This document shows positions 2,697-33,069 of a stretch of 48,446 bases of DNA, piece after piece. Source of the stretch: Calcarisporiella thermophila CBS 279.70 (taxonomy: Eukaryota > Fungi > Calcarisporiellomycota); the NCBI RefSeq assembly GCF_041956535.1, contig NW_027192213.1, positions 1 to 48,446 on the forward strand, given 5' to 3'. Below the pieces are notes generated by a model that was not told where the DNA came from, searched no databases, and was given only the letters and a program-made list of their open reading frames with translations. The position numbers and the translations under genes are program-made. Positions within the stretch are counted from its first letter, which is position 1, and each line of letters begins with the position of its first letter.

Positions 2697-5600
2697 TTAG
2701 TTGTTGAGTTCCTGTTGATGCGCAAGTTTGTAGTAAATTCCGGTCTTGGCTATCAACTCAGAATGATGTCTATCATGAACATAAACTATAAACCAATTCT
2801 AATCATTCATATGATATTGAGTGTAGACTCACCCCATTTCAACAATTGCACCATCTTTCATTACAACTAATGACCATGGATTAATAGTGTTTTTTAGTAT
2901 TAGCAATATATGCTAAAAATACTTACTGATATTATCTGAATCTTGAACAGTAGACAGTCGATGTGTAATGACAATGGTAGTTCGCCCAATCATAGCTTTA
3001 TCTAATGCGTCTTGCACTAACTTTTCTGATTCAGTATCCAAAGCACTTGTCGCTTCATCAAGCAATAGTATATCGGGATTTCTTAGCAATGCCCTTGCTA
3101 TAGCAATTCTTTGTTTTTGACCACCTGAGAGCTGGGACCCCTTTTCGCCAACTCGAGTATGATAGCCGTTTGGAAGGCTAGATATGAATTGGTGTATATT
3201 GGCCACCTTTGCTGCCTTTTCAATCTCCTCTTGAGTCACTTCACGATCTTTCCTGCTACCAAAGAGTATATTCTCCCGCACAGTTAAATTGAACAGGACT
3301 GGCTCCTGTCCAACTAAACCGATTTTTTGGCGCATTGCCTCCAGCTGCCACTCTCTCACGTCCACCCCCTCAACTAGCACTTTTCCTACATCGCAATCAT
3401 ACCATCGAAGTAAGAGAGAAATTATTGTTGATTTTCCGCATCCACTCGGCCCGACCAGTGCAATCTTTTTATTCCGGTGAATATCCATACAAATATTATG
3501 GAACACCTTCGCATCTGGCCTCATCGGATAAGTAAAGTTTACATGACGTAGCTCGGCGGTGCCTGGTGATATTCCTCTATATTTTCCATCTCGTTCTGGG
3601 TCCATAGCGGTTGCCTTGTCTGATAGCTCGAATAAAATAAGGGCAGCCTGCATTGCTTTAATGAATCTGGGCATATGTGCAGAGAATCGAGACATTCCTA
3701 ACGAGCACATCACCACTGTGAACATAACAACCGAGACTTGATCTGAGGCCATTTCACCAGAACGTATGAATCGAGCCCCGATAAAAAATCCAATTGCATA
3801 AATGAAGTAGTGAAAACCTTGAGAGAGCCCAAATCCGATGGAAGCAATATAAGCCTTATTTAGTGCTGCTCGATGAGTTTGAAGGCAGCTCTCTAGATTA
3901 TATGAGTTCAGTCATAGACCCGACACTATATACTCTATCATTTTATTCACCCTTATACTTATTTTCGAACACATCTTCAATTCCTAATGAAGCAACGGTT
4001 CTTATTTCGTGGATCGCTTCTCCAACTATTTTCCCTGCCTGCCGATATCCCTTATTCACTCTTCCCGAAAATCTACATTTAAAATTCTATTAAGCAAAAT
4101 TATTGTGTTTTTTCAGTCTAGTGCTTATACCCCTCTAGTGCTTTGACCTGAAATATTAGTGCAAAAACGTAAAGAGGCATTGCTGGCAGCAGTATTAATG
4201 ACATCTTCCATCCATAACTAAACATAATGATAAATCCTATGATGGCTGCTGACATCATTCTTCCGCCATCAATCAAGAGGATGTTAGGTAGGTCTTGTAG
4301 GACGGCTGCATTTTTAGCCAAGCAGGAGGTAAGGGCTCCAGTAGCGTGACTTGGATGATCGAAGAAAGCTATTTCTTGACGAAGAATGTTGCTGAACACC
4401 TCTGAACGAACTCTTCGCACTAATCGTTCACCACAGAAATGGGCAACCCCCTCTTCAAAAAATGTCGCAAGAAATCCAATAAAAGCCATAGCAACTAATA
4501 TATGCAGCAGTTAATCTATCTTTAGTGGCGAAGGATAAATTATCACGCGGTCTTACAATACATGAGAACCCAGAACTTGGTTGACTCCTCGACAATATAG
4601 GGTGACTGACTGAGAGCATTAAATGCATGTCCGAATAACAATCCATCAATAGGAAAAGCCTGAATATCAAGATGTGAATTAAGCAAGGCCAATTCTTCAA
4701 TTGTGCGTAGTTTCATATGACACTTAAAAGTCTTACCGCCCCTTTAATAATTGCTCCAAATAAAGACATAATAACATAGGTCCATTCTGGTGACATCATC
4801 CAGAGCACTCTAGTTATTGGTTTCTCTTTTGCACTAACTTTTACAACATTCAAATTCATGTCTTGATCCACCATGGTTGACTGATTTTCATTAATTTGAT
4901 TACTATCTGAATGCCTTTCACCATGATATTCAGGCGCAAAATCACGAACTAACTCGGCCTTCCTATCCTTATTGGCTATGAGTTGTTGTTTCCGTACAAA
5001 TGAGTTGTAGACACCATCTCTCGCTATCAGCTCAATATGTGTACCCTGTTCAATGATTTTTCCATTGTCCATAACGACAATCAAATCTGCGTCGCGAATA
5101 GTGGAAAGCCGATGTGCAATGATTATAGTGCTCCGATGTTTGGATTCAGTTTTCAAAGCTTCTTGCACGATCTTTTCTGATTGCGTATCAAGCGCGGATG
5201 TCGCCTCATCTAACAATAGAATGGTTGGATTGCGAATAAGAGCTCTTGCGATAGCAATTCGCTGTTTTTGACCCCCAGAAAGTTGGGATCCTATCTCCCC
5301 GACTCTCGTATCGTATCCATGTGGCAAACTGGCTATCCATTCGTGGCAATCGGCCTTAATACACACCTCCTCGATCTCACTTTGTGTTGGGTCCCGATGA
5401 AGTGCTCCGAGGGCAATATTATTGCGGATAGTATCGTCAAAAAGCACAGGCTCCTGCCCAACCACACCAATTTGATTTCGCAACCATTTCACATCGAGAT
5501 CACGCAAATCTACTCCGTCGAAAAGGATTCTGCCCATAGATGGATCATAAAAACGCTGCACGAGCTGTATTAGGGTTGATTTTCCACTCCCCGAAGCACC

Positions 5601-13139: not shown

Positions 13140-13443
13140 TTTTTTTTTTTTGATCAATCAATGGAAACTTTTATTAGGTTAATAGTTCCCAATATTACAA
13201 GAAGCAGACGTGAAAGAGCTTGACGCGAAGTAAGTTATCCACGTCATGTTGACGAGCATCGCTCATTGCGTCAGTAATAGTCGTTATTGTTGTGTTTATC
13301 GTGAAAGTCGTGTTTGTCGTGTTAGAGCCAAAGGGCAAGTGGACAGCAATCTCAAGAAGCGAGTGCTGGTGGGGATTGCGGGGTTCGAACCCGCGCCATT
13401 TCGATTATGGCACCTGAAGTGGACCACTACACCACCTCTCCCC
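13140..13443 (-). mobile_element. tRNA-derived SINE, subfamily A, copy 1 (full length)
   Basis: tRNA-like head with A box TGGTGTAGTGG, B box GGTTCGAACC and a ...CCCCACCA end. 292-nt head+body, A12 tail (T run 13140-13151). TSD TAGTTCCTAATTA at 13127-13139 and 13444-13456. Confidence 0.93.
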
Positions 13444-14072: not shown

Positions 14073-14538
14073 TATGTCTAATAAGGTCTATCCCGACAAT
14101 CCTCTAGCTATCCTTAAGCTCTTGATTGTCGGGGAGAGGTGGTGCAGTGGTCCACTTCAGGTGCCATAATCGAAATGGCGCGGGTTCGAACCCCGCAATC
14201 CCCACCAGCACTCGCTTCTTGAGATTGCTGTCCACTTGCCCTTTGGCTCTAACACGACAAACACGACTTTCACGATAAACACAACAATAACGACTATTAC
14301 TGACGCAATGAGCGATGCTCGTCAACATGACGTGGATAACTTACTTCGCGTCAAGCTCTTTCACGTCTGCTTCTTGTAATATTGGGAACTATTAACCTAA
14401 TAAAAGTTTCCATTGATTGATCAAAAAAAAAAAAATTAAGCTCTTGATTGTCCTTCCTTAAACACTTCAGAAGACTAATAAACGACACAAGATGGTGGTT
14501 TGAAACGTATCCGGTTCTATCTCAATACAAAATAGCAC
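14073..14538 (+). repeat. ~140-bp dispersed repeat, copy 2, interrupted by a SINE
   Basis: 14073-14130 plus 14453-14538 realign with 12980-13121 (a few substitutions/indels). Begins ~24 bp upstream of tRNA-Tyr copy 2. Confidence 0.8.
14131..14435 (+). mobile_element. tRNA-derived SINE, subfamily A, copy 2 (full length)
   Basis: Same 292 nt as copy 1; by eye there is one substitution (A box TGGTGCAGTGG). A13 tail 14423-14435. 17-bp TSD TTAAGCTCTTGATTGTC at 14114-14130 and 14436-14452. Confidence 0.95.
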
Positions 14539-14760: not shown

Positions 14761-15323
14761 NNNNNNNNNNNNNNNNNNNNNNNNNNNNNNNNNNNNNNNN
14801 NNNNNNNNNNNNNNNNNNNNNNNNNNNNNNNNNNNNNNNNNNNNNNNNNNNNNNNNNNNNNNNNNNNNNNNNNNNNNNNNNNNNNNNNNNNNNNNNNNNN
14901 NNNNNNNNNNNNNNNNNNNNNNNNNNNNNNNNNNNNNNNNNNNNNNNNNNNNNNNNNNNNNNNNNNNNNNNNNNNNNNNNNNNNNNNNNNNNNNNNNNNN
15001 NNNNNNNNNNNNNNNNNNNNNNNNNNNNNNNNNNNNNNNNNNNNNNNNNNNNNNNNNNNNNNNNNNNNNNNNNNNNNNNNNNNNNNNNNNNNNNNNNNNN
15101 NNNNNNNNNNNNNNNNNNNNNNNNNNNNNNNNNNNNNNNNNNNNNNNNNNNNNNNNNNNNNNNNNNNNNNNNNNNNNNNNNNNNNNNNNNNNNNNNNNNN
15201 NNNNNNNNNNNNNNNNNNNNNNNNNNNNNNNNNNNNNNNNNNNNNNNNNNNNNNNNNNNNNNNNNNNNNNNNNNNNNNNNNNNNNNNNNNNNNNNNNNNN
15301 NNNNNNNNNNNNNNNNNNNNNNN
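14761..15323. other. Assembly gap (563 N)
   Basis: Run of N. Confidence 1.
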
Positions 15324-16437
15324 CTATATTGTGCCAAATTTCCTCACAACAGTAATTGTTGGAATCGTATCGAGATATCTGCAGTAGGACAACCAAGCCA
15401 AGCCACGTAATCCCTCAAGCCCTGCTATTACCCTGTTACAGGGTATACCACAGATTGAAGGACCATGTACGTTCCCGCTGGGTAAATGTGTGCTAGCTGG
15501 CACAAAGGTCAAGAACTTCCGTACAAAAATCGGGAGGCTCTACAAGACAAGCAAAGGAGAGAATATCACTCCGGAATGGAAAGAGACCTCAAGCGATTCC
15601 ATCAATTGGGAGGTAGCTTGGATGTACTGGAAAAAGCGGCCGAGCGAACCCAAGCATAGGACACTAAGATGGAGACTCTTGAAACACAGATTGGTGATAA
15701 ACATCATCACTAGTAACTGGACAGGAGAACCTAATATTTGCAAGCGATGCAGAACCAACGCAGTGGAAACCATTAGTCATGCTTACCTGGAATGCCCGGC
15801 CATAAATCAGTTATGGCAAACGGTAGACAACTTCGTATGCCGCATCCTTGGAGTGAGAGCCCACGAGTCAACCAAGGAAGACAGACTATTTGGAACAGAC
15901 TACAAAACCATGGGCTACCAACGGGAAGTAGTGTCAACGGTCCATGATGCAGCAATTTGGATCGTCTATCGATCAAGATTATCGATAATAATGGATAACG
16001 CCCAACCAAGTGAAATAGCGCTCGCTGAACAACTAGGTCACGAAATGCAAAAAATCGTGAGATCCAAATGGTGGTCAGCGTCCATAAAGGATAAGAAAGA
16101 AGATTTCCAAGAGCTTTGGTGTAAGGGAAGTTGGATACAAGTCCAAGGAGACGAAATATCCTTCAACCAAAACACTTAGCTCCAATACGACCTTGCCGAA
16201 TACCCTACCACCCGCATTCTAGTTTTCCTTCTTTTTTTCTTTCTATATTAGTCCATATTCTTTTCCTCACTTGTATAATACCGTCCTTGAAAAATAGGAT
16301 GGTATTCATACGATCAATCACTACTTACATGTATTTCCCCTGACAATTTTTTTTTTGAGAGTATTTCTCCTGACAAGGCACTATACTAACTTAAAAAGAT
16401 ACTTTTCAATAAAGATCCATAAATCCCAAAAAAAAAA
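15324..16437 (+). mobile_element. 3' end of an L1/Tx1-type non-LTR retrotransposon (ORF2 zf-RVT/CCHC region, 3' UTR, poly(A))
   Basis: WEVAWMYWKKRPSEPKHRTLRWRLLKHRL and CKRC-x8-H-x4-C (CKRCRTNAVETISHAYLEC). Stop at 16179, AATAAA, then A10 at 16428-16437. Confidence 0.9.
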
Positions 16438-16445
16438 TCTCAAGT

Positions 16446-16551
16446 TGTGCCAGGAGCATTACCTGGGTGATTTTGACGTAGAAGCTGCCCTACCTTTTTA
16501 ACAGGATAGGACACTTTTCAATAAAGGTCCTTTGTTAAAAAGAAAAAAAAA
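16446..16551 (+). mobile_element. Very short 5'-truncated LINE 3'-end stub
   Basis: GACACTTTTCAATAAAGGTCC (16510-16530) matches GATACTTTTCAATAAAGATCC (16398-16418) at 19/21 positions. A-rich tail 16537-16551. ATCTCAAGT occurs on both sides (16437-16445, 16555-16563). Confidence 0.65.
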
Positions 16552-16563
16552 GCTATCTCAAGT

Positions 16564-18110
16564 CGTTGTATTTTCCTATGGTTAAAATCACTCGATGTCC
16601 ATATTATCTGTCTCCAAGAAATGCACACAGCCTCCAACGATTACCAATGGTGGTCCCAACATTGGGGCTACTCCGCCCTATGATCAAAACACAATGCTAT
16701 TCTTTCAACATCGGAACATATCAGCCTAGAAGAGACTTTTAGATCAGAAGACGGGAGAATTATCCAAGCAAAAATCATCAACAAAACCACCCAGAACCAA
16801 GACCCTCTACACATCACAACAGTATATGCGCCTGCGAACCCTCAAGATCGAAACAACTTCTATCAAACCACTTTCAAACAACTCCAAAAGGCACGCCAAG
16901 TAGTGGTAGGAGATTTCAATGCCTACCAAAGCCCCAGCTTAGACCACTGGCCACCCCTCCCAGGGTCGAACGGACAAAGAACATCATGGAAGTCACTGGA
17001 AGAGTCACTAAGAGATTTAGACCTGCACGACATCCATAGACACTTCTCCTCCCGAGCAGATCAATTCACTTGTGAGACGGTCACAAGCTCAGGAATAGTG
17101 AAAACACGTATAGATCACGCGTATACCACACCAACCCTCCTAGAAAAATCCCAGGACTTGGAAACCATAACCCCATCCCTATTCGAAGGGAGATCCACAT
17201 CGGACCACTTAGGCCTACTCCTTACGATCAACCAAAGCACCCGGAATCAACGTGGACCAGGATGGTGGAAATTAAACACCGACGTACTAGATGATGAAGC
17301 TTTCGTCAATGAGATTCAATCCCTCTGGAGAAGGAGACCCGCTATCACCGCTATTATACAACCTGGCGCTGGAGCCGTTGCTACATCATATTCGAATGAC
17401 AATCAAAGGAATATCGGTAAACTCAGAACACCAGATAAAAACCGCGGCTTTTGCAGATGATGTGGTAGCGGTAGTGTCCGACCAGGAAGATATCAACAAA
17501 ATGACAGAATGCTTGGAACTGTTCAATCTAGCCTCCAACTCAAACAAATTTCGATAAATCCGAAGCAGTACCACTTACTACAGAGAGCAGGATGCCCTTG
17601 TTGTCACCATGCCTTTTTATCCCGGAAGAAGGTACCTTTACTCTGCTGGGAATCCCTTTCAATACCAAGCACATCTTCCCGCCCACGTCATTCTACGAAC
17701 AATTGTTGGAGAAGTTGGAGAAAACAGTTAAAACCTGGAAATCACGCTCAATATCCCTCCTAGGAAAAGTTTTGCTTGTTAACTCTAGACTTTTGTCCAA
17801 GATCTGGTACTTAGCCTATCTCATTCCCTTTAAACAAGACTTCTTTGATAGAGTTTCCCGGATAGTCCAGCAATTCCTCTGGGGAGGGCGCCGCTCGCAA
17901 ATTGAGAGAAGTCTCCTGGAACAACCAAAGGGCTTTGGTCTGGGATTAATTGACCCAAAACACCAATGTACAGCCATCCTTGCTTCCTGGATCCAAAGAA
18001 TCCACAATGCGCAAAGAGAACGCATACCGCCGCCATGGTATCACTTAGCCATCCATATTCTTACGAAACACTATCCTAATGAAGGCTCCAATAAATGACC
18101 ACGACCATAC
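16564..18110 (+). mobile_element. Degenerate L1/Tx1-type LINE ORF2 (APE endonuclease plus partial RT), internally deleted and 3'-truncated
   Basis: EN motifs IICLQE, DGR, VYAP, GDFN, RIDH, SDH and GPGWWKLN are joined at ~17330 directly to RT motifs GDPLSPLLYNL and FADD, then LGIPF, GKVLLVNS..SKIWY, FLWGG and GLGL. Stops and frameshifts are present. Confidence 0.92.
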
Positions 18111-30722: not shown

Positions 30723-31901
30723 CGTTATCGAGCGCACCGAAAAAATATTTATCCACGTACCAACGTTGATTTTTACTTCAAAAAAAAACAGCTCTCAACC
30801 CCTGAAAACTTTTTAACCTGGATTAGAGATGAATATTTGTAAATGGAGTGAAGAGAAAAAACTATAAGGTAAAAGGTTGAATAGAGAAAGTGTGAAAAAG
30901 AAAAACTCAAGCAAGCTCAAGTTTTAAAATAACCCTCGCTGATTTTATTTTTAGCAAAGCCATTTTTTTATTCGCTAATTGCCAAGTAAAAGAATATACT
31001 TTAAGTGGATGCCAAGCCTTCCAAATAGGTCGATATATAGCAACCAGAAATTGGGTCCCAATCACTATCCTCAAAAAAATTAACTCAGAGAGGGGCCTTC
31101 ATTCCAATATAAGCACACACCACTTAAAATGACACTATTAGTTTAACCGTAATTTTGCGAACTCAGCACTGACGAAGCCTTCATTACTATATTATCTACT
31201 TGTAATCCCTTTTTTCCACCTTTTTGCTCTGTCCTACTCTCTTCAATGTGACTTTTATTAGTTTTGGTGAAAGGGAAATCTTGAAGGAGTCTTAAGTTGT
31301 CTAAGTTTATCAGACTTACACTTGTCAACCTCAGGTCCCCACTCTATAACTTTTGGAGTTTCATTTAGATACTTTAGCCATAAATAATTCGCCTCCTTGT
31401 TGGTTTCGGCTCATTATTTACCCAAAAAGATAATCTGTGAACAGCTAAAAACTTCACGCTATCTAGTATTCTTATGGTTAGGCACCGTTAATATTCAGCT
31501 GAAATTTCACGCCTTCTAATAAAATACAAAACTTTCCTCTCTATGTGTTATACGATAATTTGATGTTCAAACTTTTTTCAAGGTAATGTTTAGGTTCCAA
31601 TATGAGAAAAGTAGTAAATATACTACCATCGCTACGAGAAAGAAGTTTGGATAGTCCAAAGTAAAATTTAAAAATTGAATTTCGGATATAAGATAATCTT
31701 TGTATTACCGAGCTATATTTAAACGACGATATCTGGAAAGCATCGATCTCAATGCAAGTATACCATATACCAGAAAAAACCAAGTGATATTATCAAGTCC
31801 GAGAAAAATGTAATTTGAATGATCATAATTTACCATAAACTTAAATAACCCTTGATAGGCAATTAGAGTTAGAGATATAGATCAACGAAAAAAATGAAAA
31901 T

Positions 31902-31974
31902 CGAGCGTACCAGGGGTCGAACCTGGAATCTCCTGATTCGTAGTCAGGCGCCTTATCCATTTGGCCATACACCC
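31902..31974 (-). tRNA. tRNA-Arg(ACG)
   Basis: Exact reverse complement of 32833-32905; T-run terminator on the minus strand. Confidence 0.97.
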
Positions 31975-32053
31975 GCTCGCGAAAAGTTGGTCGAATTAAT
32001 ATAGATAGTCAGAAATTTTCTGACCATATTTATTGGTCTACCTCGGGCCGCAT

Positions 32054-32447
32054 TTACACGCTCTACGAGGATTCGCCAGCGTAGTGTGCGGTGTCTTGGG
32101 AGTGTTGGCCGTTTTTGAATGGAGGTCCAGACCTTTTCCCATTCCTTTGCCGTGGATGCAACCTCTGGCCAGGATTGGGGCGTCAGCGTTTCTGGTTCCG
32201 GAGAGTCATTTCGCTGTAAGTGCTTTCCCCGTCGAGTGGAGTATTCCAGGACGGGCGCGCCAGCCAAGTGACAGAGGTGGAGTGGGAAACGAGGAGGTGG
32301 ATGTTGTCGGGGTATGGCAGAACATTTCGTGATTTTCTCTAATAGGTTGGGTGGCAGGATAAGGTATCCGTGTTCCCATGATAAGGAAAAATGGTTATAG
32401 CGGCGTTCGCATGCTTTTTTTCGCCTTTCCGCGGGTTGCGCAGAAGG
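32054..32447 (-). mobile_element. L1/Tx1-type LINE ORF2 fragment (zf-RVT region), truncated at both ends
   Basis: One open frame across the fragment. FPLHLCHLAGAPVLEYSTRRGK...WEKVWTSIQKRPTLPRHRTLRWRIL aligns with FPLGKCVLAGTKVKNFRTKIGR...WEVAWMYWKKRPSEPKHRTLRWRLL of the 15.5-kb LINE. Confidence 0.85.
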
Positions 32448-32462
32448 ATGCGGCCCGAGGTA

Positions 32463-32751
32463 TTTTTTTTTTTTTGATCAATCAATGGAAACTTTTATTT
32501 AATTTCCATATATTACATGAAGTTAATGTCAATGGACTTAACGAGATATAGGTCCTTGATCGATAGACTTTCAATCGATATGCGTGTATCGTAGTTGTCG
32601 TGAATAGCATGTACGTGAAACCGATGTAATCTTTTGTACTTATCGTAAGGGCGGTCTTTTCAATAATCAAGACTCAGCTTCTGATCAAGTGGATAGCAGT
32701 CACAAACTAAGAGTAAGTGCTGGTGGGGGAAATGGGATTCGAACCCACGCC
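32463..32751 (-). mobile_element. tRNA-derived SINE, subfamily B, 5'-truncated within the head
   Basis: Starts GGCGTGGGTTCGAATCCCATTTCCCCCACCAGCACT (B box and CCA kept, A box lost). Ends AATAAAAGTTTCCATTGATTGATC-A13, identical to subfamily A. 17-bp TSD GGATGCGGCCCGAGGTA at 32446-32462 and 32752-32768. Confidence 0.93.
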
Positions 32752-32832
32752 GGATGCGGCCCGAGGTAGACCAAAAAATATGGTCAGAAAATTTCTGACT
32801 ATCTATGTTAATTCGACCAACTTTTCGCGAGC

Positions 32833-32905
32833 GGGTGTATGGCCAAATGGATAAGGCGCCTGACTACGAATCAGGAGATTCCAGGTTCGACCCCTGGTAC
32901 GCTCG
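32833..32905 (+). tRNA. tRNA-Arg(ACG)
   Basis: GGGTGTA/TACGCTC acceptor; CCTGA-CTACGAA-TCAGG anticodon arm; CCAGG-TTCGACC-CCTGG T arm; TTTTT terminator. Confidence 0.97.
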
Positions 32906-33069
32906 TTTTTGTATTTTATATCGGAATTCAAAGAGAATTAACAAATTACGGCATATTTTTTCCCCGTGGCCGACGAGATTATTCACATGCACTCTAATGT
33001 ATAAATTGAAAGTTGATTCGAAAATGTTCCTGAATTTTTTGACACCTTGACTCCAATCTAAACTTGGTC

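Follow-up and report, generated by a model that had tools for sequence, protein, structure and literature searches.

According to surveys of 2016 and 2018, non-LTR retrotransposons that integrate at tRNA genes are known only from dictyostelids, and they comprise TRE5, TRE3, NLTR-A and NLTR-B (PMC5006619, PMC5911963). TRE5, from Dictyostelium discoideum and other dictyostelids, has an ORF1 and an ORF2 with APE endonuclease, RT and zinc finger, and it integrates 40-54 nt upstream of tRNA genes with its 5' end facing the gene; the choice is position-specific and not sequence-specific, the tails are oligo(A), 5' truncation is frequent, and insertions form stacks at individual tRNA genes (PMC5006619, PMC5911963). 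NLTR-A and NLTR-B, two non-LTR lineages of Dictyostelium purpureum and Polysphondylium pallidum, came to integrate upstream of tRNA genes independently (PMC5006619). In fungi, it is the LTR retrotransposons Ty3 and Ty1 that use tRNA genes as safe havens (PMC5911963). In the literature that we covered, which is incomplete, there was no published fungal tRNA-targeted non-LTR element and no TE study of Calcarisporiella thermophila.

The data presented here support that, in the genome of C. thermophila, the 5' junctions of a LINE family, and the SINEs that go with it, are targeted to sites upstream of tRNA genes, the 5' end being turned towards the gene. The likeness to TRE5 meant here is one of function, i.e. 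of targeting. The host is a fungus and not an amoebozoan, and the distance is about 80-90 nt instead of 40-54 nt: the values are 78-91 nt for SINEs, 80-93 nt for truncated LINEs and ~55-74 nt for a near-full-length LINE, all outside the TRE5 range. The fungal LINE is also accompanied by tRNA-derived SINEs that share its tail and its target, of which none is reported for the TREs (PMC5006619, PMC5911963). NLTR-A and NLTR-B differ from it in carrying RNase H and in inserting 2-6 nt or ~50 nt upstream (PMC5006619). Ty3 and Ty1 are likewise fungal retroelements at tRNA genes, but they belong to another class of element, are inserted by an integrase and keep other distances. Within the L1 superfamily, the Tx1 group of LINEs (Dewa, Keno, Mutsu) has a C-terminal zinc-binding region and is associated with small-RNA genes. 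These elements insert into a specific sequence inside a repeat or gene, whereas the TSD flanks found here are unrelated to each other.

Our reading, to which we give a probability of about 0.8, is that an L1-like LINE and the SINEs that it mobilises in trans integrate at a position set by the tRNA gene, and that the tRNA-Arg locus described below is a damaged example, in which the palindrome was there beforehand and the SINE came last. With less assurance, we lean towards a wider view as well: that this deep-branching fungus (Calcarisporiellomycota) evolved a TRE5-like integration independently, that the proteins of the LINE hold the targeting and pass it to the SINEs in trans, and that the cleavage may generate or remodel the palindromes at tRNA-Arg and tRNA-Cys. 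If a fungal L1-like element has a tRNA habit at another distance, it adds one more example to the convergent targeting of safe havens.

The tRNA-Arg locus

The window is the whole stretch of 48,446 nt that was analysed, and the locus occupies positions 31,890-32,917 of it, with the following features.

31901-31975, minus strand: left tRNA-Arg(ACG), called by ARAGORN; head-to-head partner of the right gene
31976-32053, minus strand: the 78 nt directly upstream of the left tRNA-Arg, which make up the inner part of the left palindrome arm (inverted repeat)
32054-32445, minus strand: internal fragment of LINE ORF2, 392 nt, 91-95% identical to genomic copies
32446-32447, no strand: GG dinucleotide at the LINE 5' junction; TA or GT in other copies; outside the inverted-repeat arm
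32446-32462, no strand: distal copy of the SINE TSD, 17 nt, 100% identical to the proximal copy (repeat search)
32463-32751, minus strand: SINE of subfamily A, 289 nt, with an A13 tail at the 32463 end (similarity to genomic copies)
32752-32768, no strand: proximal copy of the SINE TSD, 17 nt (repeat search)
32754-32831, plus strand: the 78 nt directly upstream of the right tRNA-Arg, in the right palindrome arm, the inner 15 nt of which also stand at 32448-32462
32832-32906, plus strand: right tRNA-Arg(ACG), called by ARAGORN; targeted by the LINE at its 5' junction and by the SINE

A preliminary description of this DNA, made from the letters alone, had placed a LINE fragment and a SINE one after the other upstream of tRNA-Arg. 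Both are real: the fragment has at least 15 genomic copies that match 32054-32445 at 91-95% identity, the SINE has at least 184 candidate copies, the best of them 99% identical, and a perfect 17-nt direct repeat, GGATGCGGCCCGAGGTA, brackets the SINE at 32463-32751 as its TSD. When the SINE and one TSD are removed, the right tRNA-Arg is 78 nt from 32447 and 80 nt from the last LINE-templated base, 32445, in good agreement with the ~79 bp, head to head, that had been given for 32447. The LINE piece thus has the canonical orientation and distance with respect to the right tRNA-Arg, and the SINE insertion has moved it 306 nt outward from this gene.

The two tRNA-Arg genes belong to a palindrome. 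A repeat search returns an inverted repeat of 164 nt (31890-32053 against 32754-32917), and after the SINE and one TSD have been taken out the arms are 152 nt with two mismatches (98.7% identity). The match consists of the tRNA gene and exactly 78 nt of upstream flank, and the similarity ends at the 3' end of the tRNA. The genes differ by a single base, the 3'-terminal base at 31901, and the 78-nt flanks by two. This flank is unique to the locus genome-wide, and 13 other tRNA-Arg(ACG) genes share the gene only. On its 3' side, the LINE piece ends at 32054 and abuts position -78 of the left, inverted tRNA-Arg, i.e. the mirror flank, and it is co-oriented with that gene, a geometry present in no other copy surveyed.

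Mapped onto the natural copies L007 and L010 (L numbers denote the loci surveyed), the fragment corresponds to element positions ~3914-4305 of ~5100. It takes in the first third of zf-RVT together with the stretch that leads up to this domain, and it is frameshifted. Homology in every other copy extends past both ends, so the fragment is internal and truncated on both sides: leftward the other copies run ~810 nt more to an A-tail preceded by ...GGAAACTAATAAAAGTCTCCGTTGATTGATC, which rules out 32054 as the LINE 3' end, and rightward they run ~3.9 kb beyond the fragment. What the fragment lacks is thus ~800-810 nt of the LINE 3' end, with the 3' UTR, the A-tail and the TSD. An HMM search over 32054-32447 had been proposed as a check on its origin. 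Pfam gives no match for the fragment alone (32054-32445), but the open reading frames of the copies that match it carry RVT_1 and zf-RVT, and since the ORF2 of the family also aligns with human L1 ORF2p, the fragment is LINE-derived and L1-like.

Where the LINE piece has GG at its 5' junction (32446-32447), TA or GT stands in other copies, and the GG is hence not LINE-templated; it is either untemplated filler or the original flank at -79/-80. The SINE TSD had been described as 15 bp of flank and the first two bp of the LINE piece, of which the 15 nt of flank stand and the two LINE bases do not. The order of the two elements was given correctly, and the SINE arrived last. Its TSD includes the 15 nt of flank together with the GG and so spans the junction between flank and LINE; it is much younger, being 99% identical to its best relative and having a perfect TSD while the LINE piece is frameshifted and decayed, at 93-95% identity; and in all stacks of this kind the element nearest to the tRNA is the newest.

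By itself, the tRNA-Arg locus is not a clean insertion, because the fragment is without the LINE 3' end, A-tail and TSD, and because the inverted second tRNA-Arg is equally 78 nt away. Lack of TSD and A-tail, truncated ends and extra bases at the junctions are the classic marks of endonuclease-independent LINE insertions. All of these are seen here, with both ends truncated and the GG as two extra bases at one junction, and the piece sits exactly between the two 78-nt mirror arms; a canonical insertion that later lost sequence from the palindrome centre outward would look no different. It may then be that the LINE piece was never targeted, and that a double-strand break at the palindrome centre was repaired with captured LINE cDNA or DNA as filler. 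We regard this as a serious but rather unlikely alternative, as the orientation and the 78-80 nt to the right tRNA-Arg match at least 12 other copies and would have to be a coincidence, although a mild one given the spacing of 156 nt. The position of the fragment could follow from the fragility of the palindrome centre alone, and its sole hallmark of target-primed reverse transcription (TPRT) is a 5' junction at the right distance. The conclusion about targeting in the genome at large is unaffected by this alternative. Other origins of the left junction were also considered and rejected, namely twin priming, transduction of 5' or 3' sequence, a template-switch chimera of the U6 type and a recombination of two LINE copies in inverted orientation; none of them reproduces the observed strand order, and neither TSD nor microhomology speaks for them.

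LINE and SINE junctions at tRNA genes

The survey covered ~90 stretches of ~3.3 kb and the window, in which the elements were annotated by comparison with natural copies of LINE and SINE and the tRNAs were called by ARAGORN, and is a sample and not a census, its loci having been found through LINE, SINE or tRNA-Arg queries. In it, SINE 5' ends lie 78-91 nt upstream of ~25 tRNA genes with many anticodons, all divergent, so that the SINE geometry of 78-81 bp in the preliminary description holds, with a wider range. The LINE 5' junctions that face a tRNA gene directly are these.

L004, tRNA-Cys: 93 nt upstream, divergent
L018, tRNA-Met: 84 nt upstream, divergent
L021, tRNA-Asp: 92 nt upstream, divergent
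L087, tRNA-Ile: 80 nt upstream, divergent
L081, near full length, tRNA-Gln: ~55-74 nt upstream (5' end bounded only), divergent

Seven further loci have a stack of tRNA, SINE and LINE, in which the LINE 5' junction is found 4-27 nt, or one TSD length, behind the SINE tail, and the SINE is at the canonical distance from the tRNA in all seven. These are the window (Arg), L020 (Val), L036 (Lys), L044 (Thr), L052 (Asn), L060 (Ala) and L035 (Gln). At tRNA-Gly (L008) there is a gap of 507 nt, which is accounted for by a 424-nt LTR-like insert of the form TG...CA, 11 nt from the tRNA, and ~78 nt in addition. At least 13 LINE junctions and ~25 SINE junctions were found in this way, all of them divergent, and the targeted tRNAs are those for Arg, Cys, Met, Asp, Ile, Gln, Val, Lys, Thr, Asn, Ala, Gly, His, Leu, Ser and Glu. 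The TSD sequences of the canonical LINE copies are unrelated (at L044 a single TSD is common to LINE and SINE), which argues that the target is chosen by position and not by sequence. There are exceptions: L024 lacks a TSD and is more than 1.5 kb from any tRNA, and L005 and L025 are parts of stacks whose tRNA lies beyond the surveyed sequence.

For the expectation by chance we used a background of 1459 tRNA genes in 28 Mb, which is deliberately high (63 of the ~1459 candidates were scored with RF00005). The chance of finding a tRNA at the required place is then ~0.0012 per junction, and with six out of nine junctions P is ~1e-16. That the LINE is itself tRNA-targeted had been proposed from the tRNA-Arg locus; it is the other loci (Cys, Met, Asp, Ile, Gln and the stacks), and not this locus alone, that support it. 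The measurement suggested for this purpose, of the distance between 5' junctions and tRNAs, gives 80-93 nt for the LINEs (~55-74 nt for L081), and the enrichment near tRNAs is present.

Another view would be that LINEs and SINEs are only enriched in gene-poor clusters of tRNA genes, due to selection against insertions at other places or to a preference for AT-rich DNA, and that there is no dedicated targeting. The tRNA genes are indeed clustered, and the regions are repeat-rich. We find this view hardly credible, since the distance falls within 78-93 nt for all but L081 (~55-74 nt), and the orientation bias is 100% over ~35 independent insertions and ~20 tRNA species; the TSDs are unrelated, and a fixed distance and strand are not what selection after insertion produces.

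The most rational explanation is that the LINE would integrate by TPRT upstream of the tRNA gene, some 80-90 nt from the 5' end of the mature tRNA and with its own 5' end facing the gene, and that the position would be set by the nearby tRNA gene rather than by the target sequence. By analogy with TRE5-A, the LINE might be tethered to the Pol III machinery (TFIIIB/TFIIIC).

Another kind of repeat occurs at tRNA genes in this genome. It is ~424 nt long, has the form TG...CA, and is found 11-12 nt upstream of tRNA-His and tRNA-Gly (L085:2314-2733 and L008:1004-1426; also at L007:1-370 and L022:678-1128). It looks like the solo LTR of a Ty3-like element targeting the tRNA transcription start, and in this respect resembles the Ty3/Ty1 elements of other fungi.

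The LINE family and its SINEs

The LINE family is ~5.1 kb long and has an ORF1 with a CCHC knuckle and an ORF2 with APE endonuclease, RT and zf-RVT. The copy L081 (C3:775548-779219) is near full length, with an intact ORF1 of 184 aa that includes the CCHC knuckle, and an open ORF2 frame of 1372 aa. On L081:430-2187 (minus strand), Pfam finds Exo_endo_phos (residues 6-229) and the beginning of RVT_1 (residues 529-583); RVT_1 was also found on L010:218-595, and zf-RVT (PF13966) on L007:688-1890 (minus strand, E=2e-7) and on window 15490-16179 (E=7e-9). No RNH domain was found by Pfam in the available LINE pieces. The N-terminal 586 aa of ORF2 align end to end with human L1 ORF2p (E=7e-53, residues 3-580, with L1 ORF2p residues 8-572); the value for R2 is E=4e-7. 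Judged by its predicted ORF2 domains, the LINE is an L1-like non-LTR retrotransposon of the L1 superfamily, and the suggestion that the autonomous partner of the SINEs is of this class is borne out by this alignment and by a LINE tail that matches the SINE tails. Similarities to human and mammalian LINE-1 and Alu include the architecture and sequence of ORF2 (endonuclease, linker, RT start), TPRT, TSDs, A-tails and 5' truncation; unlike L1, which uses short AT-rich sites genome-wide, the fungal family keeps a fixed distance and strand at Pol III genes.

A-tails and TSDs of 10-17 nt in L008, L018, L021, L044 and L060 are marks of TPRT for the family, and the LINE 5' ends fall at many element positions, as expected of variable 5' truncation. 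A series of 5' truncations in the first list of genome matches (q1-358, 1-309, 1-283, 1-182 and so on) is partly an artefact and was not used as evidence. Copies L015, L017 and L019 end at N runs or at most 20 nt from them, and L016 ends with its contig, all of which mimic 5' truncation. It was also observed that N runs start 1-30 nt from the LINE copies L013, L014, L015, L017 and L019, imitating truncation points.

Protein matches at 78-93% identity bear the name of C. thermophila itself, and the best external protein relatives are only 24-36% identical. At least 65 Zn_clus domains in the genome are in keeping with a fungal host. On the contigs of three distant relatives (~27% identity) there are no tRNA genes; this lends no support to targeting outside the C. 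thermophila genome, and as evidence it is weak in both directions. Judging from the apparently intact L081 near tRNA-Gln(UUG), members of the family may still be active.

Two relatives of the family were seen in passing. Positions 15490-18100 of the window, beside an assembly gap at 14761-15323, hold pieces of a related LINE family (~70% nucleotide identity) with zf-RVT, endonuclease and RT. A second LINE subfamily (L010, L014, L017:604-817 and L061:950-1040) has another 3' UTR and a tail that reads ...GTCTTATTAAACAATAAAGACT..GATC(A)n. Short SINE-like elements bear this second tail, which suggests two parallel pairs of LINE and SINE.

The full-length SINE is 339 nt and begins with a pseudo-tRNA head of 76 nt, which ARAGORN calls in the full-length copies. 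The copy at the tRNA-Arg locus begins at element position 45, i.e. it is 5'-truncated by 44 nt, and has lost box A of the tRNA-like head. SINE TSDs are 12-17 nt. The 3' end consists of a short hairpin and TTGATTGATC(A)n, which are common to the LINE and to a second SINE subfamily (window 13140-13443), and the LINE and SINE tails are similar over 59 nt at 81%. A shared hairpin and tail is the expected signature of a LINE/SINE partnership, and the stringent pairs of the UnaL2/UnaSINE1 type likewise have a SINE 3' stem-loop in common with the partner LINE. From their pseudo-tRNA head, LINE-related tail, A-tail and TSD, the SINEs are classified as tRNA-derived and putatively mobilised by a partner LINE.

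We hypothesize that the SINEs with the same 3' hairpin and UUGAUUGAUC(A)n tail are mobilised in trans by the LINE proteins, and that they land at the same place for this reason. The SINEs share only the 3' tail with the LINE and yet land at the same spot, which argues that the choice of target is made by proteins encoded by the LINE. The pair of LINE and SINE is in this sense a natural experiment on target choice, and it makes the tether testable (ORF1p/ORF2p against TFIIIB/TFIIIC). There are also copies that appear intact, with the ORF2 frame of 1372 aa and two SINE copies that are 100% identical.

Those two copies, at window 13140-13443 and 14131-14434, are of the second SINE subfamily and have different TSDs. 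Two convergent tRNA-Asp genes have one such copy each on their upstream side, ~65 nt away if counted from the TSD edge and 78-80 nt if counted from the SINE 5' end, and the identity of the two copies points to very recent activity. In subfamily A, 5' truncations cluster at positions 43-48 (window 32751, two copies in L038, and L042), which is where the variable loop of the tRNA-like head meets its T-stem. This cluster could be an RT stop or a headless subfamily.

Palindromic tRNA pairs

The tRNA-Arg pair has a counterpart at tRNA-Cys. The genes at C25:432532 (minus) and C25:434988 (plus) are divergent (region C25:432532-435059, with L004 as its left half), and the arms, which are 92% identical, take in the gene with 61 nt of its upstream flank and 10 nt of its downstream flank. 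Between the genes are two different LINEs, tail to tail and 12 nt apart, each of them facing its own tRNA. The spacing would originally have been ~154 nt, and the design is that of the tRNA-Arg pair, which favours a head-to-head tRNA-Arg pair that existed before the insertions.

The palindrome could also be younger than the LINE. A single tRNA-Arg would then have received a canonical LINE, and the segment from -78 to the tRNA 3' end would later have been copied, inverted, into the LINE by fold-back or template-switch repair. Such an event would have created the second tRNA-Arg and removed the 3' part of the LINE at once. It would suit arms that are 98.7% identical, a flank that is found at the tRNA-Arg locus only, and homology whose limits coincide with the tRNA 3' end and the LINE junction; that the arms have the same limits in the tRNA-Cys pair hints at a recurrent process tied to the LINE cleavage site. 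It demands, on the other hand, that the copied segment starts within 2 nt of the junction between LINE and flank, and there is no microhomology at either junction of the LINE piece. Divergent pairs with the same anticodon and with TE stacks look common, and pairs that pre-date the insertions are a simpler explanation. We consider the inverted copy improbable, both as a history of the locus and as the origin of its second tRNA-Arg and the cause of the loss of the LINE 3' part.

With a palindrome that existed beforehand, the history of the locus would run as follows. The tRNA-Arg genes probably stood head to head with mirror flanks of 78 nt and a spacing of ~156-158 nt, which would make the midpoint of the pair the preferred distance from both genes. 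A LINE copy would have inserted, canonically oriented, at position -80 of the right tRNA-Arg, and its 3' 800 nt, A-tail and TSD would then have been deleted by a break exactly at the palindrome centre, or else the piece would have been captured without them. Later, a 5'-truncated SINE took the same site relative to the right tRNA-Arg, duplicating 17 nt.

Palindromic tRNA pairs filled with TE stacks may show how such elements reshape clusters of tRNA genes. Several more divergent tRNA pairs with the same score, 2.4-5 kb apart, are present in a partial list of the tRNA genes.
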